Positions 325-36,398 of a stretch of DNA of 64,000 bases are shown here, piece by piece. Under the pieces are notes generated by a model. The model was not told where the DNA came from. It saw only the letters and a list, made by a program, of their open reading frames with translations, and made no database searches. The DNA lies in IMG/VR virus record IMGVR_UViG_3300044633_003049, positions 124,001 through 188,000 of that record. One strand, 5' to 3'. Made by a program: the position numbers and the translations under genes. The first letter of the stretch is position 1. Each line of letters opens with the position of its first letter.

Positions 325-331
325 TTATGTG

Positions 332-11899: not shown

Positions 11900-11927
11900 A
11901 TATTATAAATATTATTTTTTTATTTTA

Positions 11928-14900
11928 TTAACATTGTGGTATGTGGTAATTAAATACTCCCGAATTTAACTCCCAACTTGTATTAGACGAATCGATAAAA
12001 CAACTAGTTGTTATAGGATTACCAATGCTATTTCTAGCTATAGCGGTACAAGTTGTTGAAGAACCTCCACCTAAACCATTAAATAAATTACCATTTGCAA
12101 CAAATAAATTATAATCTACACTATCGAGGAATATCCTCATAATTGTACCATTTGTACATCCATCTGAATCACATGTCGTGCCAATGTCGGCCAAATTATT
12201 TGTCAAACCGTTTGATGTTGGTGTTGGTGTTGGTGTCGGTGTATTAGTTGATGTATTTGTAGGTGTATTTGTAGGTGTATTAGTAGGTGTATTAGTTGGT
12301 GTAACCGTATTAGTTGGTGTGTTAGTTGGTGTTTTAGTAGGTGTAGGAGTATTGGTAGGTGTTTTGGTAGGTGTAGGGGTATTGGTAGGTGTTTTAGTAG
12401 GTGTTATAGTTGGGGTAGGTGTATTAGTTGGAGTATGTGTAGGTCTAGGTGTTTGTGGTATAGGATTTGAACAGTTATATTGATCATCATTGTAATCAAT
12501 ACCAACTGGATTTGTTAAACCATATCTTGGTTTTTGATATTTATATTTACATCTATTGAATATTGTATTAGAAATTAAATTTCCACCTGTCCATAATGTT
12601 GTCGCTGGTACAAATTGTTCAACCACTTTTACCCAATATGGACTCATTTTATTTATATATTCATTTATCGAAATGAAATCATATGGTGTAAATCCTGTGT
12701 TAGTGTTGGTAATGTAACTATTAAATACTTCCGTTAAACCAGTATATGATTTATCGTATTTTGATGTATTTGAATTTATCACCAATGTGTTTAATATGTT
12801 TTCAATATATTCATTAAATGTTACACCTGTTTGTGGTGTTAAACCTCCAAAGGATAATTCTAAATTTCTTGATTGTCTATAAACGTCATATTCAATTCCT
12901 TGTGATGGTGATAAATGGACACTAATATTTTTTCTATTTAAAACAAGTTGTTGGTCATTTACATTAACTTTTTTATTATCAATTTTTGATGTTAAATCAA
13001 ACCCATAATCTAATCCAGGTAAAGTTCTAAATGTGTCAAAATAATCTTCACCATATGTGTATGGTTTTGACATTGTTTTAATATATTTTGTTCGACCTGT
13101 TAATTGAAAAACTCCGTTTACAAATGACCCGCTTGATAAATTTGTATCAATTATATCTGACGACCTATGGTCAAGTGTTGTATCGTACCAACCAGAACCT
13201 TTTCCAAAAAATATATCACTTTGGGTATTTGTTGTTTTTCTAGGTAATCCATTTTCATCAATTGGATATTCATCTCTACTTAATGTTGATGAACTTATTG
13301 TTAATCCAGTTAGATATGTGTATCCCGATGTTGTATCCGTAAGTCCTGAACTATTTACGTACATAGTATATTCAAACCCACTACCTATTGTATATCCAGT
13401 AACTACTGTATCAACTTTTGTTCCTTGGATTACGTCGTATAAATCGGTTTCTAAATTAGGGTTGTTTGGTAATTTTGTTACATTATAAACAAACTCATTA
13501 ATTTTAATTATTGGTTCGGGAGCTCCGATAAACTTTAAAAAGAATTCCAAAGACGCTCGTGTTCCTTTTGATTTATATATGTAAGCAAGATTAACTAATA
13601 ATCTTCTATAAAATTCATATTCAGCTTCCACTAAAGTTTTACCTAATGATATACCATTAAACACAGTATCTTGTCTTAAGTATAAAGTATCCTCTAATGA
13701 TTTTTCATCAAATAAATTAATGGTTGATAATCCTAATGTTTGTGAAAGATTCTTCAATAAAATATCAGGAAAATTATTTATTCCATCATAACTTACATTA
13801 CGCATGTAAGCAATATTATCAATATATTTTTTTACTCTATCGAATGATTGACCATATAATTGAAAGATGGATTGTGCCTTTTGGTCGTCAGTATCAAATT
13901 CAAATAATTGTGGTGCTGTTAAAAATCTTACAATTAAGTTAGATTTATAATCATCTATCTCATCACCTAAACTACTTAATTGACTAATATAATCAGCATA
14001 ATCAATACCGACTATTTGTAAATTCCAACCATCTTTCGTTGTTGGCCAATTAACATATACATTAACAATTTCAGTTTTAGTTTCATCAAAACTATCTTTC
14101 GGTACCTTAAAACTTGCTTGATATTTTGGGTTAGTTTCTCTATTTAATAAAAGAGTTTCTAATTCGTCTAACCCACTAAAAAATTCTTCGGTAATTCCAT
14201 TATTTGGCCTTATTAAAACATTTTCAGTAAATCCTGTTAACCCATTAAATGGATTTCCTTTAACTTTTAATTTAATTAAATTAGAACTATCAGGTTCGGT
14301 ATATGAAACAATATCATATGTTAAACCACTATATTCACTATTATCTAAACGTTGTATGGTGTATTTTGTATATGATGAATAAAAATTTCTAATTGTATTA
14401 TCCACATTAGGTAAAGTATTACTTAATGGTTTAATAAGTGTAATATCAAAAGGATTAAATAAAATTGATTTTTGAATGTAAAATTCAGTTGTCTTTGCAT
14501 TTTCACTATAAGTTATTCCCGATAATGTTACGTCAATACTTTTAATGGGACTATCTTTATCAACTAATATAGCTGCAGGAAAGTTTGTGATAATATTTGA
14601 TATAGATACTTGTAATCTTTGTTTTAATGAACCGTATAAAGATTTTCCGGCATCGTTAATCCCACCTTTAAATTTAATTTTTTCTTTTTTCTTTACACTA
14701 CCATTTTGTGTTGTTTCACCACTTAACTCTTCTTTTAAATCTTTTAATGTTAAGAAATCGGAAAATGGTTGTGATTTAAAATTTTTGCTATCTTTTTCAG
14801 GAATGACTCTATTAATATCAAAGTTCGTATTAGTCAGTTGACTAGTACCATCTGTAATCTGTGTACCAACTAATTTATCGCTAAACGTTTCTACACCACT

Positions 14901-14939
14901 AGCAGCTTCACTTGGAACTTTATATCTTACTTTAGCCAT
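11928..14939 (-). CDS. Baseplate wedge protein (P2 gpI/T4 gp7-like segment) with C-terminal Pro/Thr stalk
   Basis: YRRLLVNLAYIYKSKGTRASLEFFLKFIG segment, TPTN repeats, and a Cys-containing terminal domain. Confidence 0.65.
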   Translation of the reverse strand: MAKVRYKVPSEAASGVETFSDKLVGTQITDGTSQLTNTNFDINRVIPEKDSKNFKSQPFSDFLTLKDLKEELSGETTQNGSVKKKEKIKFKGGINDAGKSLYGSLKQRLQVSISNIITNFPAAILVDKDSPIKSIDVTLSGITYSENAKTTEFYIQKSILFNPFDITLIKPLSNTLPNVDNTIRNFYSSYTKYTIQRLDNSEYSGLTYDIVSYTEPDSSNLIKLKVKGNPFNGLTGFTENVLIRPNNGITEEFFSGLDELETLLLNRETNPKYQASFKVPKDSFDETKTEIVNVYVNWPTTKDGWNLQIVGIDYADYISQLSSLGDEIDDYKSNLIVRFLTAPQLFEFDTDDQKAQSIFQLYGQSFDRVKKYIDNIAYMRNVSYDGINNFPDILLKNLSQTLGLSTINLFDEKSLEDTLYLRQDTVFNGISLGKTLVEAEYEFYRRLLVNLAYIYKSKGTRASLEFFLKFIGAPEPIIKINEFVYNVTKLPNNPNLETDLYDVIQGTKVDTVVTGYTIGSGFEYTMYVNSSGLTDTTSGYTYLTGLTISSSTLSRDEYPIDENGLPRKTTNTQSDIFFGKGSGWYDTTLDHRSSDIIDTNLSSGSFVNGVFQLTGRTKYIKTMSKPYTYGEDYFDTFRTLPGLDYGFDLTSKIDNKKVNVNDQQLVLNRKNISVHLSPSQGIEYDVYRQSRNLELSFGGLTPQTGVTFNEYIENILNTLVINSNTSKYDKSYTGLTEVFNSYITNTNTGFTPYDFISINEYINKMSPYWVKVVEQFVPATTLWTGGNLISNTIFNRCKYKYQKPRYGLTNPVGIDYNDDQYNCSNPIPQTPRPTHTPTNTPTPTITPTKTPTNTPTPTKTPTNTPTPTKTPTNTPTNTVTPTNTPTNTPTNTPTNTSTNTPTPTPTPTSNGLTNNLADIGTTCDSDGCTNGTIMRIFLDSVDYNLFVANGNLFNGLGGGSSTTCTAIARNSIGNPITTSCFIDSSNTSWELNSGVFNYHIPQC
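12214..12460 (-). repeat. Coding low-complexity repeat encoding ([12 protein letters not shown])n
   Basis: Degenerate 12-nt periodicity (gtattagttggt-type units). Confidence 0.9.
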
Positions 14940-15847
14940 TATCCTGTTATGTTATCTAAATTTAAGGTTTCATCAACGCTTGTTCTTTCTTCACGAACTT
15001 CATATAATGTCTCATTAAATTGGTCTTTAATTTCGTAAAGATTGTATTGTTTATAGATATTTTTATCCTTATCGTAGATTGTGTAAATACCTGGAGCAAT
15101 TGCCTTAGTTTGGTCACCGTAAAGTGCGTGTGCCAATGTTGATGCATCATGTTCAACCATTTCAATTTCAACCGTTGTTGGGTTGAAAAATGTATTTGTT
15201 AAAATAATAGTTTGACCTGGTTCGCCGATAAATGGAACCACATTAGGTCTACTTGATGGTGATGAACTTGGTGTTACTGTTAAAAATATAAAATTAGATT
15301 GGGAATCGGTATATTGATACCTAATTGCCTTATCTGTTGAGTTTGATAAATTTGCGGTAGTTGGTACACAATAAAAAGAAGAAGTTACCAATCTATAAAA
15401 GTTTGGAACTTTTTGATTATTATTATTATTAATGTATTCAATTCTATAACCAACTAAACCTTGTGGTGTGAATTTTCCTTGGTCGTCCACCGGTACATTA
15501 CCAATGTCAATAACCAATCCTCTAACTGATGGAAGTGAAGCTAAAACTCCACAATCCATAATATTTGTCCTAACTTGTTTAGGACGTAAATGTAATGTGT
15601 AAATTCCCAATTCGGAGAATTGTCCTGCTTGTAATTTTAAATTATATAATCCACCTAAAATTTCTTTGTTTGCAACTCCACCTGTCGTTTCATTATGAAA
15701 CACCGGTGTTAATATTGCTGTCGAGTCTAATTTTGTTAATGTTGGTGTAACGTTCGCAGTTCTATCTGAAACGTAATGATATAATATCTCTACGTCTGCT
15801 GGTGATACGTCTGCGGGTCTTACAATACCATATGATCCTACTGCCAT
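14939..15847 (-). CDS. Putative virion structural protein
   Basis: 302 aa inside the structural cluster. TATTTAT upstream. TAATG coupling to the next gene. Confidence 0.6.
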   Translation of the reverse strand: MAVGSYGIVRPADVSPADVEILYHYVSDRTANVTPTLTKLDSTAILTPVFHNETTGGVANKEILGGLYNLKLQAGQFSELGIYTLHLRPKQVRTNIMDCGVLASLPSVRGLVIDIGNVPVDDQGKFTPQGLVGYRIEYINNNNNQKVPNFYRLVTSSFYCVPTTANLSNSTDKAIRYQYTDSQSNFIFLTVTPSSSPSSRPNVVPFIGEPGQTIILTNTFFNPTTVEIEMVEHDASTLAHALYGDQTKAIAPGIYTIYDKDKNIYKQYNLYEIKDQFNETLYEVREERTSVDETLNLDNITG

Positions 15848-15872: not shown

Positions 15873-16436
15873 TTATTGTTTTCTAACTTTAAAATACCCA
15901 TTTCCATATATACTCAATTCACCCATACTATCAATTTCACTTAACCTGAAGTTCCTTTCCATAACTCCCAATTTACCTCGTTCCACAAAAATGTCCGAAT
16001 AAACGGTTGGTTGTTCCACAAACCCCAAGAAATGTTCGTTTCTTGTTAGGGTATAGTTAATCACTTCCTCCTTGGTAAACCCCGTAGTGCTACCTGTAAT
16101 CATGGTGTACCCATCAGAATAATCTCTATATTGTAAACTTGTGGAACCAGTTGTATTGTATGTATAATCAAATGTATAACCTGTCCAAGTTGTCCCTCCT
16201 GTTATTGATCCACTTGTTAATGTTTGTGTGTATCCTGTTGCTCCGTATTTTTTTAATTCGGATAACTTACTACCACCAATACCTAAATAGGTGAAACCTG
16301 TTGTGGTATAACCCGTTGCAGGGTTATATTCATAGTCATTTAAATAATCCGAACCACTATTTGGTGTTAGTGTGTCTGACGATATGTTCGTATATGGAAT
16401 TGTGAATCCAGTAAGTGTTCCAAAAAAAGTTGACAT
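15873..16436 (-). CDS. Putative virion protein (possible C-terminal half of a split gene)
   Basis: Nine TGxT motifs. Ends DIFVERGK...YGNGYFKVRKQ. Has its own TATTTAT motif. Confidence 0.6.
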   Translation of the reverse strand: MSTFFGTLTGFTIPYTNISSDTLTPNSGSDYLNDYEYNPATGYTTTGFTYLGIGGSKLSELKKYGATGYTQTLTSGSITGGTTWTGYTFDYTYNTTGSTSLQYRDYSDGYTMITGSTTGFTKEEVINYTLTRNEHFLGFVEQPTVYSDIFVERGKLGVMERNFRLSEIDSMGELSIYGNGYFKVRKQ

Positions 16437-16516
16437 ATAAATTATTTACACCTATAAATATCTTTATTAGGTTTTAGGTAATATAAAGATTAATTTAATG
16501 TAAATAAAGGGATAGA

Positions 16517-17242
16517 TTAAACGGCCGCAGGAATATACCAATAATCAAAATCAACATAATTAGTTGTTGAGTTATGTGTTAACCTCATGGTTCCTTTTAT
16601 GGAAACAGGATCAGAATCTAATGATGTATTAGCACTACCCGTTAATGTAAACGTTTTACCTGATTTAGTGATAGAAAAACTACTAAATGGTCCGTATTGA
16701 TAATCGCCATAAACTGTGACTCCTCCCGATGTTCCACTCACATAAGATAATGTAAAACCTGTAGCATCTATATATGATAAAGTATCAAAAGTACCAACAA
16801 CGTAATTACCTACAATCTTTCCATTAGATTCCGAAAACCCATTGTATGTATAACCTGTACCTGTTTGATTAAAAGTATTAACTTGTGCTGTTGTAGGGTA
16901 ACCGTTATATATGTTGGTGAATGTTCCTGTATTTGGTTGATACACCGTTAATGCTGCCGTTGTAATGTCTTGTGTTGCAGTTGTACTACATGAGGTTGTA
17001 CTTGTTAATTTAACATAGTTATCTAAACCTGTTATACCTGAAATTCCATAACCATTAAGTAATGTGCCACCATTTACCGATGAAGTTGCGGTTTTAGTTA
17101 AACCTGTAACAATGGTTCTATCATAAACCGCAGCATCAGTTGCGACATCCCATCTATAGATTTCAACTGTAAAATTATTTGGTACTGATGATGTTCCTGT
17201 TAATTGTACACTAACTTGAGAACTTGGTAAAAATACTGGCAT
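16517..17242 (-). CDS. Thr/Ser/Gly-rich beta protein (appendage component)
   Basis: 241 aa with extracellular-type composition. TATTTAT upstream. Confidence 0.55.
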   Translation of the reverse strand: MPVFLPSSQVSVQLTGTSSVPNNFTVEIYRWDVATDAAVYDRTIVTGLTKTATSSVNGGTLLNGYGISGITGLDNYVKLTSTTSCSTTATQDITTAALTVYQPNTGTFTNIYNGYPTTAQVNTFNQTGTGYTYNGFSESNGKIVGNYVVGTFDTLSYIDATGFTLSYVSGTSGGVTVYGDYQYGPFSSFSITKSGKTFTLTGSANTSLDSDPVSIKGTMRLTHNSTTNYVDFDYWYIPAAV

Positions 17243-17277
17243 TTTTTAAATTTTTATTTCTTTTATAATAAATATCC

Positions 17278-20200
17278 TTAATCTATAATTTGAGTAATAT
17301 TTCGTTTATTTGTTCCCGCAGTTGAATCGTCATATTGTAATTGGAATACACCACCAGAAGACGGTGAAGTTTTATTGACATTGAAAGTATAATTTGCTCC
17401 ACTAGGTAATGCCCAATAACCTGAATATGTCGTTTGGTTAGGACCGGTGATATTCACTGAAATACTATATGAGGATGCCGCTCCTGATGGATCTAACACT
17501 CCATATCCAGATAACGTTCCTGAACTGGCGAATGTTGAATTACCATATAACCATATATATTTAGTTGCACCACTAGTATTTGTTACTGTAATTGTCGCGG
17601 TACCATTACTTGTTACCGGGTATGTACCGGATACAACGGTATATGCGAATTGTGATGCACATATGATTTCACTATGTGATGAATATGTAACACATCCATT
17701 TGCGTCTGTCACTCTTAAGTAATAATAACCACAACCTAATGAAGCATATCCCTCTGATGGTGACGATCCTGGTACGTTAAGTGTATTAACAATTAAAGTA
17801 TCATTTGCATAATCGTAATCAGTGTAAGAAGTTGCGGTGGTGTCTTTATATAATGTATAAGTTTTAGGGAAAACTCCACCTGTTGAGGTTACTTGAAGTG
17901 ATCCGTTTCCTGGTACCGTTTCATTAACTACCGATGTTATTGTTGCAGTTTGTACTGTTGGTTGTGTTATTGTTTGTGAATATGAATGTACACAACCTAA
18001 ACTATCTTTAACATAAACTGAATGTGCTGCAGCAGTTAATGAATTAAATGTTTTATCTAACGCAAAATATGTAACATTATCTATTGAAGTGCTGTATCCA
18101 GTTCCTGACCCACCTGACCCACCTGTTACCGCTATTGAACCATTTGAACCACCATTACAACTTACATTTGTAATTGTAAATGTCGCATTTGGTGCGGTTT
18201 TTGCTAAGTTACCAACTGAAACTGAAGCTACAGTTCCAACTCTATTATTATTTCTAGCATAACCAGTGTATGTGCCTCCAGCTAAACTACTAAATGTTCC
18301 ACTAGCTTGCCAATTATCATTATCTCTTGAATACTCATATGGTGCACCATTACCACCACTTGCGGTTAATGTAAATGCGGCAGTACTATCATCATAACAT
18401 GTTTGAACCGTTGAACTGCTACTTACCGTTAATGCCGGTAGTGATGGTGTAGGAGTTGGTGTTCCTGTAGGAGTATTAGTTGGTGTCGCTGTGTTAGTTG
18501 GGGTATTAGTTGGAGTATTAGTTGGAGTATTGGTCGGAGTATTTGTTGGTGTTGGTGTATTGGTCGGAGTATTAGTTGGTGTATTAGTTGGTGTGTTAGT
18601 AGGTGTTACCGTATTTGTTGGTGTGTTAGTAGGTGTGTTAGTAGGTGTGTTAGTAGGTGTGTTGGTTGGAGTTACTGTATTAGTTGGGGTAGGTGTTGGG
18701 GTTGGTCCTAACACAACAATACTAATACCGAATGAACAGTTTACTGTTGGTGTTGGGGTATTAGTTGGTGTAGGGGTATTGGTCGATGTAGGTGTGTTAG
18801 TTGGGGTATTAGTTGGCGTATTTGTCGGTGTGTTAGTAGGGGTTGGTGTGTTAGTAGGTGTGTTAGTAGGAGTATTAGTTGGTGTATTAGTATTAGTCGG
18901 AGTATTAGTTGGTGTGTTGGTTGGCGTTGCAGTATTAGTCGCAGTTGGGGTTGGGGTTGGTCCTAACACAACAATGCTAATACCAAATGAACAGTTTACA
19001 GTTGGTGTTGGTGTATTGGTTGGTGTAGGTGTGTTGGTCGGAGTATTAGTTGGTGTTACAGTATTAGTCGGAGTATTAGTTGGTGTGTTGGTAGGTGTAT
19101 TAGTAGGTGTTACCGTATTGGTCGGAGTATTAGTTGGGGTATTAGTTGGTGTTACCGTATTTGTTGTCGTAGGTGTTGGAGTTGGTGCTAACACAACAAT
19201 GCTAATACCAAATGAACAGTTTACAGTTGGTGTTGGAGTATTAGTTGGAGTTACAGTTGGGGTAACCGTATTAGTTGGTGTATTAGTAGGGGTTGGTGTA
19301 TTGGTAGGTGTTGGAGTTGGACTTAATATTGCAACACTAACACCGAATGAACAGTTTACTGTTGGAGTTGGTGTATTGGTTGGAGTTATAGTTGGTGTAA
19401 CCGTATTAGTTGGTGTTGGAGTTGGTGTTGGTACGACATAACAAACTCCTGTTTCTAAAATTCTAATATTTGCGGGTGGATAATACGTTTCAGTATCTAC
19501 AACAGGAACTAATGATTGATATTGAATTGGGTCTGTAATTTCATATATAGCCTCAGAGACATAAATAACTTCAGTTATAAAACCATTATTAATCGTATTA
19601 AATCTATTGTATTGTACATAACCATATGAATCGACAATATATGTTGTTCCCGTATAATATTCACAAGCAGTCACACCCGTACTTTGTGTAAATCCACTTT
19701 GAATAAAAGTTATTTTATCAAACGGGTTTTCAGATTCATAATCTGTTATGTTGTATGACGTTAGTGTACCTCCTGTTTGAGGGATATTTAAATATAAAAA
19801 CTGATTCGTTTCATTTGGACCAATTGTTATTTTTTCAGATGTAAGTAAACTCGTTGACCCTGTAAAAATATTAACATTAAAAGTAACACCAACGTATGAT
19901 GGTACAGTGTTACCACTAATATCGGTTAAATAAAAATTTATACCATTATCATCATTATCAAGGTCACTAATTTCTTCTGCATTAATTAAAATCGTAAAAG
20001 GATTACGATATGTAAATTTACCACTACTAAATGGAAAAATCTCTCTATAAATTGAATCCGAGGCCTCGGTATATCCTGTTCCGGTTAAATTATTATTGTA
20101 AAGAAAAAAACTTGTAGGTTCAGTTCTATTATCCACAAAACCTCTACTGACTGTTGCACCAGTAGTTGCTCCTGTGTAAAATGTATTTGTATTCCAATTT

Positions 20201-23200
20201 GTAATTAATCCGTCAATATTATTTTCTAAACTTAAAGTTAATAAACTATAATCATATGAGTCTATATACCATGCACTTGTATGATCAAGATTTGTTGTTG
20301 ATATGTTATGGGTACCAGTTGTTGCCGATGTTACTGTCGCATCATTACTATTTTGCCATATTAAAACATCGGTTACAACACCATTTACCATTTTGTATAT
20401 GGTTCTGAATGGACTCGTTCCAACTAAAGAATAATAACCATTTAATGCTGTTGAGTCACCATGAACGTCATAATATAATTTCTTACCAATAGTAATACCT
20501 AATCCATTTGAATTATCATAATTTATTACCGTTAAATTTGGTAAGTTTTCAGATTTTATTTCATGTGTGAAATTTAATTCTATGTCAGTAACGCCGGGTT
20601 TTTCTTCATAAGAATATAATGTATCAATTGTGTTTCCTGATAGTGAAGAAAGATATGCTGCCGCTTGATTATCGGCATCATTTTGTGAAACTGTTGATGT
20701 TATAAATCCTTCAGGTATAGTATATATAATCGGTAATGGATTATTTAATTCCCCAACTATTGAACTACCTTGAGTGTACGTTATTGTTAATGAATTACTT
20801 GAGTATGTGGTTGGGGTTGTTGTATATTTAACAGGATATCCCGCAGTGTAAGATAGAAACCACAATTTAAGTGTTTCTGTGATATAATTTGTTTTAGACG
20901 TATCTATAACATTTAGTGAATATTCATTTATGGAATTTTTAGTTGTATATGATAATGTTTTTGTTGTTGGTTTTCCGTCACTTGAATTAGACGGAATATT
21001 ATAAAAATACGCTCCATCATTATATATACCTCTATCCCATGAAGATAAATCGTCTTTTTTATAAATTGTTGATCCGGTTGTTATGTATGGTGTTGTTGCG
21101 TATCTACTGAAAAAATAACTAAATTTTTCTTTAAAATCTTTTGTCTGTGCTGTTAAAGCCAAAATTAAAAAAAACGCTAAAGCCGCAACTGCAATAACTA
21201 AACCAACAATTGGTACAAATACAGATGCTCCGGCACTTGCTATTGATCCACCACCGCTTATTAAAGCCGAAGTTTTTATTATACTTGCCGTAAACCCATA
21301 AACAAATCCCGCAGATAAAACAGATCCACCTAAAGCCGCATAAACCCCTGCGTCATCTTCTAATAATTTAAATAATTCGGGAACTCCAGAACCTAAAATG
21401 TATCCTTTATTAAGTTTTATCACCATATGTTGTACACCTGTAATACCGGAAGAAGTTTCATTCGCAAAATTCCACGCATTGAAAAATGGATTATTAGCGT
21501 TAGTTTCCGTATAACCCGAAGTGTACCCTAAATGATATTTGTAAACCGATGGTTGTAGATAATCTGATGTTGATAAAATTTTATTAACTAAACCAACACC
21601 AGTCATTGACGGTTCAACACCTGTTGGTACTAATAATTCATTTGCTATTAATGTTTCATCGCCTCTATTCTTAAGATTTGTAAAATCTTTTGGTCCTGTA
21701 ACCACGTCTGACGTTTTTCTTGGTCCAAATAATTTTTTAGTTACTTTATAGTCGGTATGTGTACCGAATTCTCTTTTTAATATATTTCCAACTTGATATA
21801 CTTTATTTGTGGGTGACGTTCTAACATTATCACCGTAAAAATACGGTAAAGCAAGTGATGTTAATAAACTATCATTATAAACATTAGTTCCTTTTATAGT
21901 GTAATTATTTGTTGATCCACTCCAATTTGAAATTGATACATTTGACCATAATTTAGTTACCGCTATTGGATTGTTATATGAGTCATATGGTGAATAAGGG
22001 TGAACTCCCATATCATATCCGTAAATCTCGTCTCCACATCCGACAGTAATTGATGTTGTAATTGATGCTCCGTTATATGATTTATTTTGTCCGACGGCAA
22101 TTCTAACTCTAACTTGTCCACTATTAGTTACAACATATATTGTTTTAGTTTTTGATGTTTTAGGAATTTTAATTGATGTTACATCGATAAAACCTATAAA
22201 ATATGGTTGTTGTCTACTATATGATTCGGTATAACTTACCTTTCCGGTAGTGTTGTTATTTACGCCATCACCAATTGAAAAACAAACGTCATCAGCGGTA
22301 CCTGTGTATGTAACCGTTACTGGAACAATTCTGTAACTAGATTCTAAAGTAAAAATAGTATCTTGTACTGAATATTTTAATCCGTTGCTTGCTAATGGAT
22401 TTACAATTGGAATATATTGATGTGTGTATGTATATCCACTAATATAATGTGTTTGTGAACTATTACCACAACCTAATGAAGCTCCAATACAACTTGACTG
22501 AAATACAAAAGAATGTGTAGATGGATTATATGTGTATATTGATCTTTTTTCAATATCTCCAGAAGCATAAGAATATGTTACACCTGAAGGTGCTTCAATT
22601 GTTAATCCATTATCCAAATACCAAGGTCCTGTCGTGAAAGGTGAGAAATTACTAAATCCGGAATTAATATCCAAAATACCATTTATTGGTGGTAAATTTG
22701 GTGTTTTAGCCCTATATAATGTTACAACTGTTGGACATGTTGTACAATAATAACTTGGGCTTGTAAATCCAGTACAAAATTCAGCACTTATTATTACAGG
22801 GTCACAATCAATTTCACAATACATTTGTCCACTCGTTCCACCTGATGTAATGATATCTAAAGTTAGTGAAATGTCATCATTTTTATTTTCATCAAAATAA
22901 AGTGTAATATATTTTGAAGTCTCAGTAGATAGTGTATTTAAATTTTCAACATCTACTAACGTATAAACACCGTTTATTTTTTGATTAATATTAATAGTAA
23001 TATTTGAACCGTTATTTGAACCTGGTGTGAATGTAAATTTAAATAACTTTTTGACTTTTGGTTTTATGAAAACATAAACCGGAATTTTGTTATTTAATTG
23101 ATTATAATTGAAGAAATAACTTTGTATGTTTGATTTAGTTCCAGCATTAGACCATGTTAAAGTTTTTTGAACTCCACAATCGTTTGTTGATGATGTGACG

Positions 23201-23247
23201 TCACTTTCTAAACAATCAATACTAAATGTACCTCCGGTTATACTCAT
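17278..23247 (-). CDS. Giant adhesin-like virion protein: hydrophobic hairpin, DUF5977-like motif, mucin-like Pro/Thr stalk, SprB-like repeats
   Basis: About 65-aa G/A-rich hydrophobic segment; [19 protein letters not shown]; over 300 aa of TPTN repeats; [12 protein letters not shown]...VKDSLGC and VTDANGC. Confidence 0.7.
18440..19440 (-). repeat. Coding repeat: (TPTN)n tracts punctuated by four VNCSFG(I/V)S(I/V)xxL modules
   Basis: The sequence aatgaacagtttac recurs near 18731, 18986, 19211 and 19347 within 12-nt-periodic DNA. Confidence 0.9.
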
Positions 23248-23249
23248 TT

Positions 23250-23546
23250 TTATAAACTTTTAATTCCGTAAGTTTCCGATTTTTGACCAGGAACATGTCT
23301 TAATTTGACAGTATCAGTTATAACTGAACTATCAGATGATTTATTATATGTTTTTCTATACATTTCTTCATTACTCCCTTTATTAAATATTACAATATTA
23401 ATATCTGTTGATTGATTTGGTGTGATAAATAAATTAACCGCAAACGTGCCTGTTATACCTGTAACATCAAACCAAATAACTTTATTAACCGTTCCGAAAT
23501 TGGTGCTTATTTGTTTTACAGGTATGGGTGTATATGTTGTACTCAT
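23250..23546 (-). CDS. Hypothetical 98-aa beta-rich protein
   Basis: Tightly packed (1-2 nt gaps) between two appendage genes. Confidence 0.6.
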
Positions 23547-23547
23547 G

Positions 23548-24843
23548 TTATAATATTTGATAAAAATTCCCTAGTGCCGTGGTTGTGAATGTGGTTCCTC
23601 TTTCAACAAATCTTGATTGAAAAAATCCGTCACAATCTATCCAAGATACGGTGTCACTATATTCTTGATTTGCATTAAATGTTATGGTTCTACAATTTAC
23701 TGTTGTTCCTGTTGATGATGTTTCTGAACCTGACGTATCTACTGTAATTGAATTACAACTACTTCCTGTTACTACATTATTATATGCCGCAACACTAATT
23801 AGTGGATAACCTGGTGATAATGTATTAATTAATATACAATCATTAATCGTATATGTGCCTGTTGATGTTATATTTCTAAATACAAATCCATTTATGGTAT
23901 CATATTTAATATTTCCTATTGCCGTTACGTTAATTGTTGTCCCACTATAATATGTTGTACCTGTTGTTGCACTTGAACAATCAACACCGTCAGGACATGA
24001 CGCGGTAAATACCACATTAAATGGTGTAAATGTATTACCCGTTGTTGTTGAATAAACCACAACGTCTAATGTTGTTTTTGTGTCATTACTAATGAAACCT
24101 ACCGTATCAGATATACTTTGAGCCCCCGTACCAAATGCGTATGTGGTACCATAACTCTCAGCTACATTACCGACGAATATTTCATTATTTGAGTTTGTAT
24201 TTCCACTAATGTTAATTGTAATATCTACATTACCATAAGTTTGATTTAATTCAAAAAGTTGTGTTGGGGTGTTATATCCTTGTGTCGCAACATTGTATGT
24301 TAATGAACCTGAACAAACTAATGTTGTTCTTAATGTTGATAATGCACAATTGCCCGCTAATTCAACATAACTTGAATCTGTTAATGTCATACCTCCATCA
24401 TAATTTGAAAATAAATATGGTTCTGTATCGGCACAACTTTGAGCACAAATATAATCTGTAAATGTTCCTGGATATGAAAAAGTTAGATATGATGTCTCAC
24501 CACTATAAGTTCCACAAGGATAATAATATAAATAAATCTTATTATCGGTTTCACCTGATATATTGTTTAAATCACTCTGATTAATAACGATATTATATGA
24601 TGTACATTCGTCACAAGGTTTTTTAATATCTTCTTTAGTAATTAATTGATTGGATAATTTTTCACTATATGAAACATGTAGGGGATTAATATTAATATAT
24701 TGTAGTGCACGTTCTTTTGTAACTCCTTTATCTGTTGTTGGAATCGTTGTTTTTGATGTTAAAAAACCATCTTCAGCGGCTCTATTAATATCACTATCAG
24801 TTAATATTTTATTTTTGGTTATCCCTGTCCATGATAATGACAT
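23548..24843 (-). CDS. Cys-rich modular fibre-associated protein
   Basis: Overlaps the fibre gene by 35 nt. Several Cys-bounded S/T-rich modules. Confidence 0.6.
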   Translation of the reverse strand: MSLSWTGITKNKILTDSDINRAAEDGFLTSKTTIPTTDKGVTKERALQYININPLHVSYSEKLSNQLITKEDIKKPCDECTSYNIVINQSDLNNISGETDNKIYLYYYPCGTYSGETSYLTFSYPGTFTDYICAQSCADTEPYLFSNYDGGMTLTDSSYVELAGNCALSTLRTTLVCSGSLTYNVATQGYNTPTQLFELNQTYGNVDITINISGNTNSNNEIFVGNVAESYGTTYAFGTGAQSISDTVGFISNDTKTTLDVVVYSTTTGNTFTPFNVVFTASCPDGVDCSSATTGTTYYSGTTINVTAIGNIKYDTINGFVFRNITSTGTYTINDCILINTLSPGYPLISVAAYNNVVTGSSCNSITVDTSGSETSSTGTTVNCRTITFNANQEYSDTVSWIDCDGFFQSRFVERGTTFTTTALGNFYQIL

Positions 24844-27139
24844 ACAATGACTCTATTTTATTTTCTAATTGTTTTATTTTATTTTCCAATTGATGTATTT
24901 TGAGAGTATGGACATCGTTATAGTTGACACTCATTGGTAAATCACCAACGACTAAGTCAGAACAAGCTTCTTTAACACTTTGAGCCGAATAACCATATCT
25001 TACTTGATTATCACCTTTTAATGTGAATTGTATAACATCTAATGTTGATAAATCCACATTTGGATTAACTGATATAATATCTTTATATCTAATATCTGAT
25101 ACTTCGTAATACGCAGCAGCACTTACACTACCTGTAACAGATAATGATCCTGAAATTATTTGATTTCCTTTAAATGTATTTGAACCAGTTGTTGCAAAAT
25201 CTCCATAATTTTTTATTTGTATTGAACTAGACACAATACCTGAAGGTATTCCATTCAAACCGCTATATGTAATCTGTGAACTACCTGAAACTAAAGATGG
25301 TTTGTCGATAATACCATTGAATGATATTTGACCTGAACCGGACACTACACTTATACCATTAAAAAATGAACCTGAATGTATAGTTGTTCCACCCAATACT
25401 TGTGAAGAACCTGATACCAAACCTGGTGGAACATCTGTAATACCGGTGAATGATATTTGTGATGAACCTGATATTACACCATCAGTTAATCTTAATAATT
25501 TTGATTCGGACCCCAAAGGACCAGCCATCCAATAATCATTTGTTGTATTCCATAATAACGAACCTGATACTAATGATGCGGTAGTTGCATCCCTAACAAC
25601 CAAACCCGCATTTGCGGCTCCTGAACCATTTAACGATATAATATTATCACCAATTTCAAGTGTTGTTGAATTGATTGTTGTAGTTGTGCCAGATACAATT
25701 AAATTACCACCAATAGTAACTGTTGTACCGTCATCTGTTATTGATGAGTCACCTACAGTTGATGAGGAAGTAAATTTAACTACTTTATTGTTAGTACCTG
25801 ATGTTGTAATTGAAGTTCCTGAACTTCCGTCTGTTCCATTAGAACCACTAGACCCTGAAGACCCGTCAGTACCATTACTACCTGATGAACCACTAGTACC
25901 ATCTGTTCCATTAGAACCACTAGTACCAGAACTACCATCAGTACCATTGGAACCTGATGAACCATTAGAACCTGAACTACCGTCTGTTCCGTTAGAACCA
26001 CTAGTTCCTGAAGTACCATCTGTTCCATTACTTCCACTACTTCCCGAAGACCCGTCAGTTCCATTAGAACCTGAAGAACCAGAAGAACCATCTGTTCCAT
26101 TAGAACCAGATGAACCTGAAGAACCTGAAGAACCAGAAGAACCATCTGTTCCATTAGAACCAGATGAACCTGAAGAACCTGAAGAACCAGAAGAACCATC
26201 TGTTCCATTAGAACCAGATGAACCTGAAGAACCTGAAGAACCTGAAGAACCATCTGTTCCATTAGAACCAGATGAACCTGAAGAACCTGAAGAACCAGAA
26301 GAACCATCTGTTCCATTAGAACCAGATGAACCTGAAGAACCTGAAGAACCAGAAGAACCATCTGTTCCATTAGAACCAGATGAACCTGATGTTGATGCGT
26401 TTGTTTTTGTTTCTAATCTACCTGATGTTGTATTATAAACAATAACTTCTGTTGATGTTGATCCTGATGTTAATCCTGTAATATAAATTGAACCTGTGAA
26501 TTGATGTGTGTCGTCATTGGTATCACCAAATTTTGTTGAACCTGATGAATATAAAACAGATGATGTAACATATGTCATATAAAGTTCGTCAGCCGTAATC
26601 GCACCTTTAACTTTAAATGAACCTGTTACTTCTAAATTGTTTGTTGTGTAATAATACCCTGCACCTGATATAAATAAAGAATCACCTGATGTACCTGAAG
26701 AACCGTTGGTTCCATTAGACCCTGAAGAACCATTTGTTCCGTTAGAACCACTAGAACCTGAAGAACCGTTGGTTCCGTTAGAACCTGATGTACCATGTGT
26801 TCCTGGATTTCCTTGATTACCCTGAGCTCCGGCCTCCCCATCACTACCTGATGTTCCAGAAGTTCCACTTGTTCCAGAAATACCTGATGAACCTGATGAA
26901 CCATTTGTTCCATTATTTCCCGTGTCACCTTTTGTTCCACTTGAACCACTTGTTCCGCTAGACCCTATTCCTGATGTTCCAGATGTACCATTACTTCCAT
27001 CACTAAATCCAGTTAAAAATAATTCTCTTTTAATTCTAGACGTTACCGTTTGACCGGAATTATTTACAATTAACCATGAACCTGATATGTCTCCCTCAAA
27101 TAAGGGTAATTCACTAATTGGTATATCTGTTCCTGCCAT
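24809..27139 (-). CDS. Tail fibre with collagen-like G-S-S/G-T-D repeats and C-terminal S74 intramolecular chaperone
   Basis: N-terminal IPISELP, two long Gly-X-Y tracts, SDIRYK autocleavage motif, GYSAQSV, then a terminal coiled coil. Confidence 0.85.
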   Translation of the reverse strand: MAGTDIPISELPLFEGDISGSWLIVNNSGQTVTSRIKRELFLTGFSDGSNGTSGTSGIGSSGTSGSSGTKGDTGNNGTNGSSGSSGISGTSGTSGTSGSDGEAGAQGNQGNPGTHGTSGSNGTNGSSGSSGSNGTNGSSGSNGTNGSSGTSGDSLFISGAGYYYTTNNLEVTGSFKVKGAITADELYMTYVTSSVLYSSGSTKFGDTNDDTHQFTGSIYITGLTSGSTSTEVIVYNTTSGRLETKTNASTSGSSGSNGTDGSSGSSGSSGSSGSNGTDGSSGSSGSSGSSGSNGTDGSSGSSGSSGSSGSNGTDGSSGSSGSSGSSGSNGTDGSSGSSGSSGSSGSNGTDGSSGSSGSNGTDGSSGSSGSNGTDGTSGTSGSNGTDGSSGSNGSSGSNGTDGSSGTSGSNGTDGTSGSSGSNGTDGSSGSSGSNGTDGSSGTSITTSGTNNKVVKFTSSSTVGDSSITDDGTTVTIGGNLIVSGTTTTINSTTLEIGDNIISLNGSGAANAGLVVRDATTASLVSGSLLWNTTNDYWMAGPLGSESKLLRLTDGVISGSSQISFTGITDVPPGLVSGSSQVLGGTTIHSGSFFNGISVVSGSGQISFNGIIDKPSLVSGSSQITYSGLNGIPSGIVSSSIQIKNYGDFATTGSNTFKGNQIISGSLSVTGSVSAAAYYEVSDIRYKDIISVNPNVDLSTLDVIQFTLKGDNQVRYGYSAQSVKEACSDLVVGDLPMSVNYNDVHTLKIHQLENKIKQLENKIESLYVIIMDRDNQK
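26081..26388 (-). repeat. Near-perfect 54-bp tandem repeat (about 5.5 copies) encoding GSSGSSGSSGSSGSNGTD
   Basis: ccattagaacc recurs at 26097, 26151, 26205, 26259, 26313 and 26367. Confidence 0.93.
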
Positions 27140-27177
27140 AACTATTGATTAACTAATAAATATATTAGTTTTTGGTT

Positions 27178-28050
27178 CTAATCGACATTTATGTAATTAT
27201 TATTTTCAGTTTTAATAGGATTGAGGTCTTCAGTATTAATTCTCATATAACTCGCAGCACTTTCACCACAATTAACAACCTTAACAACTTGATTTGTTAG
27301 ATACGGTGATTCAAAAACTATTCTAATTGTTTTCTCTTCAGCAACATCAAATGATTTTGTTACACTACCATTAATTCCAATTGGTGATGTGGTTTCGTCT
27401 CCCCAATGTACCGTAAATGATGACCCCGATATTGATAAATCTTGTCCGTCAATTATTATATATTCAGACAATTCGTTCTTAATTTGTTGGGGGTATTCAG
27501 ATGTCAAATTTCTAACACCTGTTACATTCGTTGTTCCGTCTGGATTTGTATCATTAGCTAAAATGATATTAACTAATTGATACGTTGTTGTATTGTTAAT
27601 TGTTATTGTGCTACCAGTTTCAGTACAAACACTTTCATATGCGAAGTTTGCACTAATTTTATTATGTCCAATATTTTTATCAAACTCAACCATATCTCCC
27701 ATTTCATCGGCCGTTGCTTCTAAAAATAATGGTAGTTGGAAATCGTCATAAACTTGACTATTAATATGTGTTTCTATTTCTTGTTCTGTCGTACCAGTAC
27801 CAATAATTAAATTCCATGTGTCTCCTGTTGTTGGTGTATTCCATTTATAATATCCACTTGTTACGGTACCACCTGTTACATTAAAAACTAAAAAACCTGT
27901 GTCGGGTGTAAATCCGGTAGCTAAAAAGTCGGTCGCTCCCGTCCATGAAATCGGCGTATCATTAGAATCATACCATGTCTTTCCCGTTAATGAAACTAAT
28001 TTCACTTCAGGTATTTTTTTTCTTCTAATGGTATGGTTAATTCTTTTCAT
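27178..28050 (-). CDS. Putative virion protein with PKD-like WGD motif (possible N-terminal half of a split gene)
   Basis: FTVHWGD motif, seven [ST]GxT motifs, C-terminal INTEDLNPIKTENNNYI peptide. Confidence 0.6.
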   Translation of the reverse strand: MKRINHTIRRKKIPEVKLVSLTGKTWYDSNDTPISWTGATDFLATGFTPDTGFLVFNVTGGTVTSGYYKWNTPTTGDTWNLIIGTGTTEQEIETHINSQVYDDFQLPLFLEATADEMGDMVEFDKNIGHNKISANFAYESVCTETGSTITINNTTTYQLVNIILANDTNPDGTTNVTGVRNLTSEYPQQIKNELSEYIIIDGQDLSISGSSFTVHWGDETTSPIGINGSVTKSFDVAEEKTIRIVFESPYLTNQVVKVVNCGESAASYMRINTEDLNPIKTENNNYINVD

Positions 28051-28855
28051 AAAACTTTATCGGGGTATTTGTTATTCCTGATTTTGTCCCTCTACTAATT
28101 CCGTTATATTTGTAAACTTGGTATGAATAATCTCTTTTATCAATATCAACTTGGTAGTACATATCATTTTGTTCAGTAATAGTGTGACTCGTACTATAAC
28201 TATCATTTGTAAAATCTAAAATTGTACCTTCTTTTGCGTTATAAAACTTTGCTGTCATAAAAAAGGTGTTACTTGTCGTTGTACCACTTAAATTTGTTTC
28301 AGTTAAAACACTCTCATCTTGGAACCAAAAGAAATACATATTTTCTTTGTTACTATAATTTGATCCTCTAAAAACAGGTAAATGTATATAACCATTAAGT
28401 GAATTATAAAACATTTTTTCACCTAACGGTAACGACAAATTTTTTGCAAATATTAATTTTCTATTTTGTCTTGTTGGTGGTTCACATGTTAATACATTAC
28501 CTGAGACGGTTCCTGGTGTTTTAAAAAATTCCAATCTAAAAAAACTTTCGGTGGCCTGTTTCAACATACTTTCATTTTCTTGTGAACTTATACCTTGTGG
28601 GGTATAATCTTGAGTATATGTTCCATCACTTAAAAAATAAAAATAAAACCAAATATCGGTTTGCGCTACACCATCAGATAAATATGGTTTATGGATATAT
28701 CTAACCGTTTCGTAATTCTCAATTGGATTAATAATATCACTTAACACTTCGGTTTCAAATTCTTTCAAATTTTCTTCCCAACCGAGATTTGTTTGAAAAT
28801 CAGTTTCAGTATTTAATAATATATTTAAATCAGTATCTTTTCTTAATATTTTCAT
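28037..28855 (-). CDS. Putative virion structural protein
   Basis: 272 aa, translationally coupled within the baseplate cluster. Confidence 0.6.
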   Translation of the reverse strand: MKILRKDTDLNILLNTETDFQTNLGWEENLKEFETEVLSDIINPIENYETVRYIHKPYLSDGVAQTDIWFYFYFLSDGTYTQDYTPQGISSQENESMLKQATESFFRLEFFKTPGTVSGNVLTCEPPTRQNRKLIFAKNLSLPLGEKMFYNSLNGYIHLPVFRGSNYSNKENMYFFWFQDESVLTETNLSGTTTSNTFFMTAKFYNAKEGTILDFTNDSYSTSHTITEQNDMYYQVDIDKRDYSYQVYKYNGISRGTKSGITNTPIKFYEKN

Positions 28856-34081: not shown

Positions 34082-35914
34082 TTAATATGTAGTCGTTCCT
34101 AATGTTTTGGTTCTAACTCTAATATCAGTATTAGGGAACCTTATTTGGAATATTTGATTAGACTTCATAAAAATGGTCATATCTGACTGTAATATTTCCT
34201 TAGTTAATGTGTCTTTGTATGCCATTGCGGTTTCTGATGAAGAATATAACCCACCAATCTTATTATACGCCCTGATATCAATTACATTCACTACTCCAGG
34301 TATTTGACCAATATGTCTAATTAAATCTCCAATGAATAATGGGTCACCCATTTTTCTTTTAGAAATGTCAAAGAAATCTGTTGTATCGTTAATTGCTGTT
34401 TTAACGACATCTGTTGGGTTTTCATTTTTGTCGATGACAATATCCATTTCCAATGATAAGTCAATAACTTCCCCACTTGCAATGTCAATATAATCATTTA
34501 TCATTCTATATTCAGAAAGATATTCTATAATATTACTTTTTAATGTATTTGAAACTGTGTCAGATAAATTACCATTATCGTCATAGGATAAAATTTTAAT
34601 TTTTACCTTATTGTCTTCTTCAACGACGTTCACTTTTGCTGGTGCTCCAAATGTTGCTGGCATCACCTCAATTATTGATTTATAGTCATTTAAAGTAACC
34701 GCTCTATTTTGTGCAGCAAAATTATAAGAAATCATGTTTCTCAATTCTTCAATCGTTGGTTGATCTGCCCCACCGACAGCTGGAGTTACATTTGTAACCC
34801 TCATAGATTGTGTCACTTGTGTGTTAATGGTAGATTGAGGTCCGTTGATATCTAATTCCACATTATCAATACTCGTGATAACATTCACACCTAAATTGGA
34901 ATCTTTTCCTCCACCAACTCTGTATTTTATGAATAAGGTTGTACTTGATTTTGGTATTGCCCCCAATGACATATTATTAAGATAGGTTGAAAGATTAACT
35001 TTCATTGTACCATTCATATAACTATCTAAATTGTCTAATGGATCAACATTACCCGAACCAAATGTAACTGAAAAATATCCTTCTGGTGTATATTCAGTTA
35101 TAAATTTATTTGTAACAATTTTATTAGTTCCAGCCTTAAAATTATTTTTATCTGATACTGCGGTCGGGTCCGGTACAAAAACTTTATCCTGTACCAAACT
35201 TTTAACTTCATACCATTTGTTTGTTAAATCACTAAATTCATTTGAAGTAGGATTAGTACCAAAGTTAGTACCATCTTTATGTATAATACTACTAACACCT
35301 AACACATCTTGTTCGGGTAAATACAATTTTAAAAATGGCTTTTGGTCTAATGATGTGATTACTCTCCTATATATTCTTGTAACCCCATTAACTACCGCTT
35401 CTCTTTTTGTAATTGTATATGACACCAATGAATTATTTGCATTGAAATTTGGTATTTTTAATCTATTTGGTTCACCCTTACTATTAAATGGGTCTGAAAA
35501 ATCTACATCCTCTACGGTTTCAAAAATTTGTCCTCCTCCTGATACTTGTGTTCCTGATCTCATAATTCCCAAATATCTATCATCTTCTTTATCACCTCTA
35601 ACTGGTACATTTATTGAGAAATCACATAACGCAACTGAAGGTCTTTTGCATGGTATTTTCATACCATAAGTTTTTGCAATATGAAATAATGATTGTCTTT
35701 GTTGAGCAAAATCTAACATTGTTTCTTGCCAAACTCTATCTATATGGAAGTGTAAGTTATCTGCTACCGCAGCATTTAAATCCAATAATACTGAAAATAT
35801 TGATGCGTCGTTGGTATTTTTAACCAAGTCAGGATAATATTGTGTTGTTAGATTTACTAACTCTTCTCTTAAACCTGCAAAATCTCTTGTTGCGTATGAT
35901 ATTTTTTTACTCAT
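34082..35914 (-). CDS. Baseplate wedge protein (T4 gp6/baseplate J family)
   Basis: YATRDFAGLR, YRVGGG, GGAD...AQNRAVTLNDY. Directly follows the gp25-like gene. Confidence 0.9.
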   Translation of the reverse strand: MSKKISYATRDFAGLREELVNLTTQYYPDLVKNTNDASIFSVLLDLNAAVADNLHFHIDRVWQETMLDFAQQRQSLFHIAKTYGMKIPCKRPSVALCDFSINVPVRGDKEDDRYLGIMRSGTQVSGGGQIFETVEDVDFSDPFNSKGEPNRLKIPNFNANNSLVSYTITKREAVVNGVTRIYRRVITSLDQKPFLKLYLPEQDVLGVSSIIHKDGTNFGTNPTSNEFSDLTNKWYEVKSLVQDKVFVPDPTAVSDKNNFKAGTNKIVTNKFITEYTPEGYFSVTFGSGNVDPLDNLDSYMNGTMKVNLSTYLNNMSLGAIPKSSTTLFIKYRVGGGKDSNLGVNVITSIDNVELDINGPQSTINTQVTQSMRVTNVTPAVGGADQPTIEELRNMISYNFAAQNRAVTLNDYKSIIEVMPATFGAPAKVNVVEEDNKVKIKILSYDDNGNLSDTVSNTLKSNIIEYLSEYRMINDYIDIASGEVIDLSLEMDIVIDKNENPTDVVKTAINDTTDFFDISKRKMGDPLFIGDLIRHIGQIPGVVNVIDIRAYNKIGGLYSSSETAMAYKDTLTKEILQSDMTIFMKSNQIFQIRFPNTDIRVRTKTLGTTTY

Positions 35915-35915
35915 C

Positions 35916-36368
35916 TTAAATGTTTAGTATTATAAAATCCGAAGACGTAAAAGCTCCGTTATTTACTGTATATTCAATTTTAACTACAGCCGTATGTGGT
36001 TTTTCAGAATCGCTTGAAACTCTAAAAAGTCTATTATCTTCATTTTCTTGTAGTGAATTAATTTGGTCTGGATCATCTTCCGCTGATACAACTACTATTG
36101 AGGTTAAATCCAAATTAGGAATATATTTTTTTACAGAATCTCGAATTTCACTTTCAATTAAACCGAATGTAACCGCATCGTTTTGGTCAAAGATGTATTG
36201 ATATAATCTAGTACCAAAATCAGGTAAAAAATATCTACTACCCTTCTTTGTCAATAGGAGGTGTATTAAATCCGCTCTAATCTCTCTTTCGGGAGTACCA
36301 GTCATCTTTAAAAACTTTCCTTCTAAACTATCCCTAAATGGGAAATCTATTCCGTAGGTTGCTGCCAT
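35916..36368 (-). CDS. Baseplate gp25/GPW-like protein (start moved to ATG 36368)
   Basis: GIDFPF and LLLTKKGSRYFLPDFGTRL. The track's start at 36374 is a TTG abutting the TATTTAT motif. Confidence 0.9.
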   Translation of the reverse strand: MAATYGIDFPFRDSLEGKFLKMTGTPEREIRADLIHLLLTKKGSRYFLPDFGTRLYQYIFDQNDAVTFGLIESEIRDSVKKYIPNLDLTSIVVVSAEDDPDQINSLQENEDNRLFRVSSDSEKPHTAVVKIEYTVNNGAFTSSDFIILNI

Positions 36369-36398
36369 ATTCAATAAATATAAACAATACGAAAATGG

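Follow-up and report, generated by a model that had tools for sequence, protein, structure and literature searches.

Probable fission of a structural-region gene by a tail-fibre cassette in a clade of uncultured freshwater phages

We analysed a 64,000-nucleotide window (positions 124001-188000) of the IMG/VR virus record IMGVR_UViG_3300044633_003049, a 211,784-bp viral contig from lake water, with a focus on two of its genes: a 290-amino-acid (aa) open reading frame (ORF) at 27178..28050 and a 187-aa ORF at 15873..16436, hereafter the N-half and C-half genes. Between them lies a 10.7-kb block of five tightly packed genes (16517..27139), hereafter the cassette. All seven ORFs are present at these coordinates on the minus strand, as are the neighbouring genes and gene parts of this locus, and the gene order along that strand is 272 aa, 290 aa (N-half), 776, 431, 98, 1989 and 241 aa (cassette), 187 aa (C-half), 302 aa, and 1003 aa. 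The upstream flanking gene (272 aa; 28037..28855) and the downstream flanking gene (302 aa; 14939..15847) are conserved, with 87-99% and 97-98% identity in the window's clade, respectively, and the latter, which is followed by the 1003-aa gene (11928..14939), was used as an independent tree marker. The N-half start overlaps the end of the 272-aa gene. The locus sits in the structural module of a contractile-tailed, T4-like myovirus with a T4-type baseplate gene set, including a gp25-like gene (35916..36374; phrog_261/43), a gp6-like wedge gene (34082..35914; phrog_219/6), and a tail sheath gene (59919..62750; phrog_23) whose product is only ~33% identical to that of Microcystis phage Mel-JY01, the nearest cultured phage. 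The position of the N-half and C-half genes suggests that they encode a baseplate component.

The N-half protein (P0001) consists of an N1 domain (approximately residues 1-85; 27796..28050), a conserved segment, a PKD-fold domain with a WGD motif (approximately residues 135-262; 27265..27648), and a short tail (residues 263-290; 27181..27264). N1 is its best-conserved part in the window's clade (82-98% identity over residues 1-45), and the PKD-fold domain holds a clade-specific variable insert at residues 166-210. The tail, which carries a TE-x6-TE motif at the C-terminus of the protein, is semi-conserved. The C-half protein (P0002) begins MSTFFGTLTGFTIP and opens with a hypervariable N-terminal arm (residues 1-30; 16347..16436); its C-terminal segment (residues 116-187, TRNEHFLGF..FVERGK..YGNGYF; 15876..16091) is the most conserved part of the family and is presumed, from that conservation, to anchor in the virion.

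An earlier note on this DNA had pointed to the TE-x6-TE end of the first ORF, to the MSTFFGTLTGFTIP start of the second, and to a TATTTAT-containing motif upstream of it, all of which are present, and had suggested that the motifs of the two ORFs normally occur in one polypeptide. That suggestion is borne out by a single 442-aa ORF in a related locus (L012:6368..7696), which carries LPIFLE..DEMG..FD, WGD, the (S/K)R/KL.E..(K/R)YG motif, and FVERGK..YGNGYF together. The N-half aligns to residues 1-222 of this ORF and the C-half to residues 235-442 (tblastn E-values of 2e-35 and 9e-57), and the ORF is flanked by homologs of the window's 272-aa and 302-aa genes, so that relatives hold the intact gene between the same neighbours; like the N-half gene, the intact gene overlaps the end of the 272-aa homolog.

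In scans of IMG/VR the N-half matched 16 loci and the C-half matched 197, of which 80 were kept; the survey reported here covers 81 IMG/VR loci with the C-part plus the window (82 in all). In 48 of the 82 loci, adjacent and non-overlapping matches to both halves fall in one ORF of 300-442 aa with the C-part at its C-terminus, while the remaining 34 encode a stand-alone C-half of 168-210 aa. The C-half aligns residue for residue with the C-part of the fused proteins and the join is seamless: the N-half runs to the last PKD strand ('..QVVKVVNC') and is then followed by ~29 residues without counterpart in the fused proteins, and 'STFFGTLTGFTIPYTNI' of the C-half aligns with '..NPLGTFSGFTIPYTNI' of the fused proteins. 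The C-half methionine falls in the linker between the domains, where it stands in place of a linker residue, and the hypervariable arm corresponds to that former inter-domain linker. The cut point is the same across the split clade, with N-domains ending in '..VKVVNC'-like sequence and C-halves beginning at one alignment column. No intact copy of the gene was found in the 211,784-bp genome record, where both halves are the sole copies.

A profile search of 1.84 billion representative proteins recovered 1581 relatives at E-values up to 0.001, and a domain-wise breakdown was made for the 149 best representatives, excluding the window's two halves. Among these 149, PKD and C domains occur in one chain in 59. 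A further 33 have the N-part alone, with 14 reaching 340-1296 aa through extensions, 27 have the C-part alone, many as fragments, and 29 are unrelated multi-PKD giants. Several fused relatives carry in-frame inserts in the linker, of 226 aa (P0014, where the insert is a Fib_succ_major domain, E-value 6e-23), 156 aa (P0075), and 864 aa (P0114). These inserts, together with the low modelling confidence of the linker described below, mark the linker as an apparently natural, permissive, and exposed insertion site. N1 is present in some fused genes (360-442 aa; e.g. L034 9371..10510) and absent from others (300-327 aa; e.g. L038 9566..10486 and L064 9590..10495), the two forms being interspersed on the tree with 7-8 changes; no separate N1 gene was seen among fused-clade loci. 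One outgroup protein of 193 aa (P0136), classed as C-only and considered as an independent fission, was rejected as such, as it reflects a frameshift in the fused gene of L093 (1..201, 32..691). This frameshift falls on consecutive lysine codons where the PKD domain ends, and could stem either from faulty sequencing or from a genuine slippery site. A C domain behind a different N-terminus (P0135) lies on an 873-bp contig without context.

Both halves are intact and, judging from their substitution patterns, functional under purifying selection, with ratios of nonsynonymous to synonymous substitution rates (dN/dS) of 0.25-0.32 for the N-half and 0.05-0.35 for the C-half. The split arrangement was seen in many independent IMG/VR contigs, and across the junction of the 241-aa, C-half, and 302-aa genes half or more of the sampled words were held by 13 lake or freshwater metagenome runs.

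In order to determine which state is ancestral, trees were rooted with a distant group of relatives, whose C-domain scores are 64-104 bits vs. 140-260 bits for the in-group. This group keeps PKD and C always in one protein, and one of its members (P0044) lies directly upstream of a 302-aa gene homolog that is 58% identical to the window's, compared with 67-76% across the in-group fused clade. In a concatenated PKD+C tree with the 22 distant fused proteins as the outgroup, the split forms make up one clade (Shimodaira-Hasegawa-like approximate likelihood ratio test, SH-aLRT, 100) nested among fused forms. In a tree of the 302-aa gene rooted with the outgroup phages L094 and L093 (58% identity, fused genes), the split loci are again one clade (ultrafast bootstrap, UFboot, 99; SH-aLRT 96), fused lineages branch below it with support of 93/86 and 92/86, and a single change is reconstructed in 100% of bootstrap trees. 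Since both rooted trees nest the split clade among fused lineages, the whole gene is indicated as ancestral, with a single fission, which the identical cut position in all split lineages also fits. No split locus without intervening genes was seen, and insert sizes range from ~4.6 to 11.9 kb. Together with the collinearity of the halves and the purifying selection on them, these results make it very likely that an ancestral gene was split and both halves kept, as the earlier note had proposed; that this happened once, by insertion, is a likely reading of the same data. The evolutionary claim is strong, while the mechanism discussed below is one that we infer.

Structure models were made for the fused relative L034, with AlphaFold run on 102 sequences (model m20079a43b043), an earlier run on 29 sequences having reached a predicted local distance difference test score (pLDDT) of 52, too poor for use. 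The model has a mean pLDDT of 77.7 and a predicted template modelling score (pTM) of 0.38, and is usable domain by domain only. N1 (residues 10-80) and the PKD-fold domain (residues 107-205) are both modelled at pLDDT ~90, followed by a low-confidence linker (205-245), a beta-rich C domain (245-310), and 70 final residues that are near-invariant yet poorly modelled; residues 116-187 of the C-half are likewise modelled poorly as a monomer. The PKD fold superposes on chain 4l9d_A, PKD1 of Vibrio PrtV (VIA-align Z 9.8; root-mean-square deviation 2.4 A over 78 residues), and Foldseek gives a TMt of 0.72-0.73 to PKD1 domains. The family profile does match multi-PKD giants. No fold could be named for the C domain, as the fold searches were dominated by the PKD domain; in the ESM Atlas, the feature search hit a single unnamed viral cluster (0.81) and the fold search hit only PKD or unnamed viral clusters. 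A complex prediction for the N-half and C-half, made with alignments of our own, gave no answer (score 0.00) and speaks neither for nor against binding. That both halves are kept under purifying selection is at most an indirect hint that they reassemble into a working protein.

Split-type N-domains differ from fused ones in a pair of cysteines. Cys142 (codon 27625..27627) belongs to the first PKD-domain hairpin, while Cys261 (27268..27270) follows directly after the last PKD strand ('KVVNC'), at the point where the chain stops or, in sister lineages, runs on as a Pro/Thr-rich linker. Of 30 split-type N-domains, 26 have both cysteines, and all 15 fused forms lack both. By Ig-fold topology the two would lie at the same pole of the domain, where a disulfide stapling the new chain end is plausible.

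The first cassette gene (776 aa; 24809..27139) encodes a collagen-like tail fibre (collagen E-value 2.5e-42) with a conserved ISELP-type N-terminus and, at its C-terminus, a weak match to the Peptidase_S74 chaperone (E-value 0.028; 15.1 bits, under the 22-bit cut-off). This gene contains 6.0 copies of a 54-bp unit at 99% identity (26066..26389), which suggests recent repeat expansion. The second (431 aa; 23548..24843) and third (98 aa; 23250..23546) genes have no family match; the former keeps its position in the window's clade and the L041 group, and the latter always follows it. The fourth gene (17278..23247) encodes a 1989-aa giant with a Pro/Thr-rich linker (residues 1266-1608) and repeated C-terminal domains that are common to other appendage proteins. 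Its Pro/Thr(/Asn)-rich region (18424..19452) holds four repeated 'NCSFG..' blocks, and a plus-strand ORF over this linker (18491..19441) resembles an antisense artefact of the repeats. Midway along the giant, residues 680-698 (21154..21210) form a strongly hydrophobic, transmembrane-like segment (mean Kyte-Doolittle 3.1 over 19 residues), which is odd for a fibre or adhesin in a protein that is otherwise virion-appendage-like. In many split loci, a homolog of the fifth gene (241 aa; 16517..17242) immediately precedes the C-half. Neither Pfam nor PHROGs gave a usable match for the 431-, 98-, and 241-aa proteins, and none of the five cassette proteins matches an endonuclease family; they have collagen or tail-fibre matches or nothing.

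Parts of the cassette are also found at other places in fused-clade genomes: the 1989-aa protein shares its distal domains with extensions of the 1003-aa gene, and L069 (17231..17968, on a 335-kb contig) has a 241-aa gene homolog (58% identity) away from the split site, downstream of the 1003-aa gene's homolog. The insert was therefore probably drawn from the phages' own pool of appendage modules.

While the flanking genes are 97-99% identical in the window's clade, the cassette genes are mostly 30-62% identical to those of most relatives, and within both halves divergence grows toward the cassette. The N-half is 96% identical to that of L011 over residues 1-45, 16% over residues 166-210, and 25% in the tail. 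The C-half is 27% identical to that of L023 over residues 1-30 and 95-100% over the rest. Its arm is 23-27% identical to those of L023, L029, and L032, with a nonsynonymous divergence (dN) of 0.79 vs. 0.011 for the rest of the gene (against L023) and a dN/dS of ~1.2. A gradient of this kind inside the halves is the pattern expected of recombinational cassette exchange with breakpoints in the conserved outer parts. In the few genomes with both sides known, no link was found between C-half arm type and either tail type or 241-aa gene type.

The N-domain is reused in relatives. In four sister lineages (loci L026, L073, L075, L078, L086, and L089) it forms the N-terminus of proteins of 999-2228 aa, in which '..VN(x)C' is followed by long Pro/Thr-rich linkers and then variable distal domains; in the window's clade it stops after the short tail, and a separate collagen-like fibre gene comes next. 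The N-domain is thus able to carry an appendage, but attachment of the window's fibre to the N-half does not follow from this. The earlier note had gone further, taking TE-x6-TE for a gained docking peptide for the ISELP-type fibre, and this is not supported by the relatives. The tail occurs in L004, L007, and L010, has diverged in L011, and is missing from L008/L009, where the N-half ends '..KVVNGNNTI' and a collagen fibre with the same conserved N-terminus nonetheless lies directly downstream. As the 45 N-terminal residues of the fibre are conserved in all of these loci alike, the tail is dispensable for whatever the fibre N-terminus binds. The broader idea in the same note, a plug-in branched appendage, fares better in part: a fast-evolving collagen-fibre cassette and an N-domain that heads long proteins in sister lineages both agree with it. 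That the N-half serves as an appendage platform in this phage is possible, though we would lean slightly against it, and direct contact between N-half and C-half is a more tentative suggestion.

The following scenario would account for these observations. The ancestral gene would have encoded N1, PKD, a flexible linker, and a conserved C domain in this order, as part of a baseplate-peripheral module. Insertion of DNA encoding appendage proteins, in the common ancestor of a single uncultured freshwater phage clade, would have cut it once, in the linker, yielding an N-half whose chain stops just behind the last PKD strand, with a new cysteine pair in the split clade, and a C-half with its own start codon behind a ATATTTAT motif. 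N1 and the near-invariant last 70 residues of the C-half might hold both pieces in the baseplate, with both cut ends facing outward, and the N-domain would anchor appendages covalently in the sister lineages and at most non-covalently here. The half-genes could act as conserved homology arms between which the five-gene fibre cassette is swapped by recombination, and exchange of this kind would explain why divergence climbs from both flanks to the cassette. In its fullest form, the scenario is a two-piece baseplate socket in which a disulfide-stapled PKD end and a hypervariable C-half arm recruit the cassette fibres and the half-genes serve as arms for host-range cassette swaps. We offer this last form as a speculative model that may well be wrong.

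The rival still in play is a genuine but incidental fission, with the halves assembling independently as before and the cassette fibres attaching elsewhere on the baseplate, so that neither half docks them. No N/C or N/fibre interface could be shown, L008 retains the fibre without the tail, and the 272-aa and 1003-aa genes also bear variable, appendage-like C-terminal extensions, which would make the region a general hot spot for modules. Against this stand the N-domain that covalently heads long appendage-like proteins in four sister lineages, the cassette-near parts of both halves, which co-diverge with the cassette while the distal parts stay 96-100% identical, and the dN/dS of the C-half arm. 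We regard an incidental fission as a possibility to be taken seriously, albeit a doubtful one.

The opposite direction of change, in which the genes were ancestrally separate and the 300-442-aa single genes arose by deletion of the intervening DNA, is improbable. Deletions that fuse neighbouring ORFs are common in phages, and in an unrooted tree of the 302-aa gene, from which identical rows and loci without that gene were left out, 21 distinct split rows and 32 fused rows are parted by a single branch (SH-aLRT 95), two sides of one branch whose direction is open without a root. Yet the outgroup phages, at 58% vs. 67-76% identity in the 302-aa gene, have the fused gene in the same context, all 22 distant two-domain representatives are fused, and the split clade is nested in fused lineages in both rooted trees. 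Given this nesting and the fused outgroups, genes would have to have fused seamlessly and independently no fewer than two or three times, always at the same residue.

A third alternative, that the halves are rejoined by a split intein, trans-splicing, or translational bypass and the virion holds one polypeptide, is very improbable. The cysteine after the last conserved N-half strand and the residues behind it superficially resemble a short N-intein fragment, and split-intein fractured genes are known from metagenomes (PMC2677866). But the C-half aligns with the fused proteins from residue 2, leaving no room for a ~100-aa C-intein, there is no terminal HN-Cys/Ser/Thr junction, and the tail is missing from L008 and gives way to Pro/Thr-rich linkers in other loci. 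Moreover, five genes with their own starts, two of them with promoter-like motifs, lie between the halves, and the fibre start is out of frame with the N-half, with stop codons in between. Finally, a chimeric assembly, or two decaying pseudogenes of a defective provirus, as might be suspected of a metagenomic contig classed as 'provirus' and estimated at 63% completeness, is scarcely credible, since identical or related split arrangements recur in many independent contigs and samples and both ORFs are intact in all of them, with dN/dS well below 1 outside the arm.

Several points weigh against the reading of an insertional fission that produced a two-piece baseplate component. Insertion as the cause of the fission is not strictly separable from invasion of an already split gene, the sole argument being that no insert-free split locus was seen, and root placement leans on outgroups picked by lower similarity. 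The cysteine pair belongs to a single clade and thus represents one evolutionary event tied to the fission, with no repeated correlation. The anchoring roles given to N1 and to the C-terminal segment derive from conservation, and the monomer model has neither a confident N/C interface nor a fixed packing (pTM 0.38). Pfam, PHROGs, PDB sequences, and GenBank phages yield nothing usable for either half: P0001 and L034 have no Pfam PKD match at threshold, a profile search of PDB sequences gave chance-level matches only, and tblastn against GenBank phages found no match for either half or for the 302-aa gene. At the RNA level, freshwater metatranscriptome contigs span only the 3' part of the C-half with the beginning of the 302-aa gene, and a portion of the 241-aa gene; they may derive from DNA, and are compatible with transcription without proving it.

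The promoter-like motif ATATTTAT marks both boundaries of the cassette, at 16454..16461 (minus strand), 18 nt upstream of the C-half ATG, and at 27156..27163 (minus strand), 17 nt upstream of the fibre gene. Its total count in the window is no higher than chance, but 8 of the 14 minus-strand copies lie at most 60 nt upstream of a gene start, a zone that makes up 3.8% of the window. It precedes the fibre, C-half, 241-aa, 302-aa, and sheath genes, among others, with copies at 11905, 15860, 16454, 17268, 27156, 59633, 62790, and 63541 (minus strand) that stand 6-40 nt upstream of eight structural-gene starts, and is a candidate late-promoter element of this phage group. TATTTAT variants are also found before genes starting at 34027, 56151, and 58109.

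The neighbouring genes vary in a comparable manner. Homologs of the 272-aa gene have variable C-terminal extensions, reaching 482-1111 aa in total in relatives (L026 610..2244; L073 643..3978; L086 1386..2957; L004 8180..9991; L007 7988..9988). The 1003-aa gene has a conserved N-part of 770 aa and a hypervariable C-part (802-2661 aa in total in relatives). With these extensions, three adjacent sites appear to gain appendage modules. The 1003-aa protein also contains a Pro/Thr(/Asn)-rich linker (12223..12435), over which a plus-strand ORF (12178..12483) resembles an antisense artefact of repeats. Two more giant ORFs lie upstream in the structural region (45235..51078, 1947 aa; 51391..56151, 1586 aa). 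IMG/VR labels the 211,784-bp record a 'provirus' with an estimated completeness of 63%, while the gene content of the window (sheath, baseplate, ribonucleotide reductase, helicase, primase, UvsX-like, and SbcCD-like genes) resembles that of a lytic T4-like myovirus.

If the socket model is correct, a structural gene was turned into an integration and display site for receptor-binding modules. The fission itself would be a clean, phylogenetically polarised case in which several host-recognition genes, inserted as one cassette, split a virion gene, and in which the split became fixed throughout a clade of abundant lake phages. The case marks a seemingly surface-exposed, insertion-tolerant linker in an uncharacterised yet widespread baseplate-region family, whose anchor domain is reused for long appendages, and suggests that host-range modules can be exchanged as cassettes between homology arms. 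This bears on how host range is read from metagenomes and on where phage tails accept new binding modules.

Among known systems, the PKD Ig-fold domains are matched in fold by residues 107-205 of the L034 model, which superpose on Vibrio PrtV PKD1, and by the WGD motif; in contrast to recognised PKD domains, the window's protein falls short of the Pfam threshold, and the fold is uninformative on specific function. Shuffling of phage receptor-binding and baseplate modules combines a conserved anchor with exchangeable distal modules, with branched fibres in, for example, G7C and CBA120. The present locus likewise pairs a conserved virion-proximal domain with variable distal modules, and variable DNA is apparently swapped among near-identical phages, but the exchangeable module lies inside one former gene, between its halves, and not at a fibre gene's 3' terminus.

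In environmental phage-like DNA, split-intein fractured genes also have halves parted by inserted genes (PMC2677866); unlike those, the halves described here contain no intein motifs and no room for them. The nearest parallel is offered by the 'genes in pieces' known from T4-like phages, namely nrdA split by mobE in Aeromonas phage Aeh1, topoisomerase genes 39/60 with mobA in T4, and 43A/43B in phage 25/44RR (PMC2988022). As in those cases, a gene that is contiguous in relatives is cut by inserted DNA into two separately translated ORFs, and both pieces are kept and presumably still cooperate. The published examples concern enzymes, with either one homing-endonuclease gene or a brief untranslated spacer as the insert, whereas the locus described here has a virion structural gene as its target, an insert of 4.6-11.9 kb of appendage genes with no endonuclease match, a cut at a domain boundary, and a split that is fixed clade-wide. 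What is new relative to 'genes in pieces' is thus the virion gene as target, the multi-gene fibre insert, and the reuse of the N-piece as the head of fibre-like proteins.

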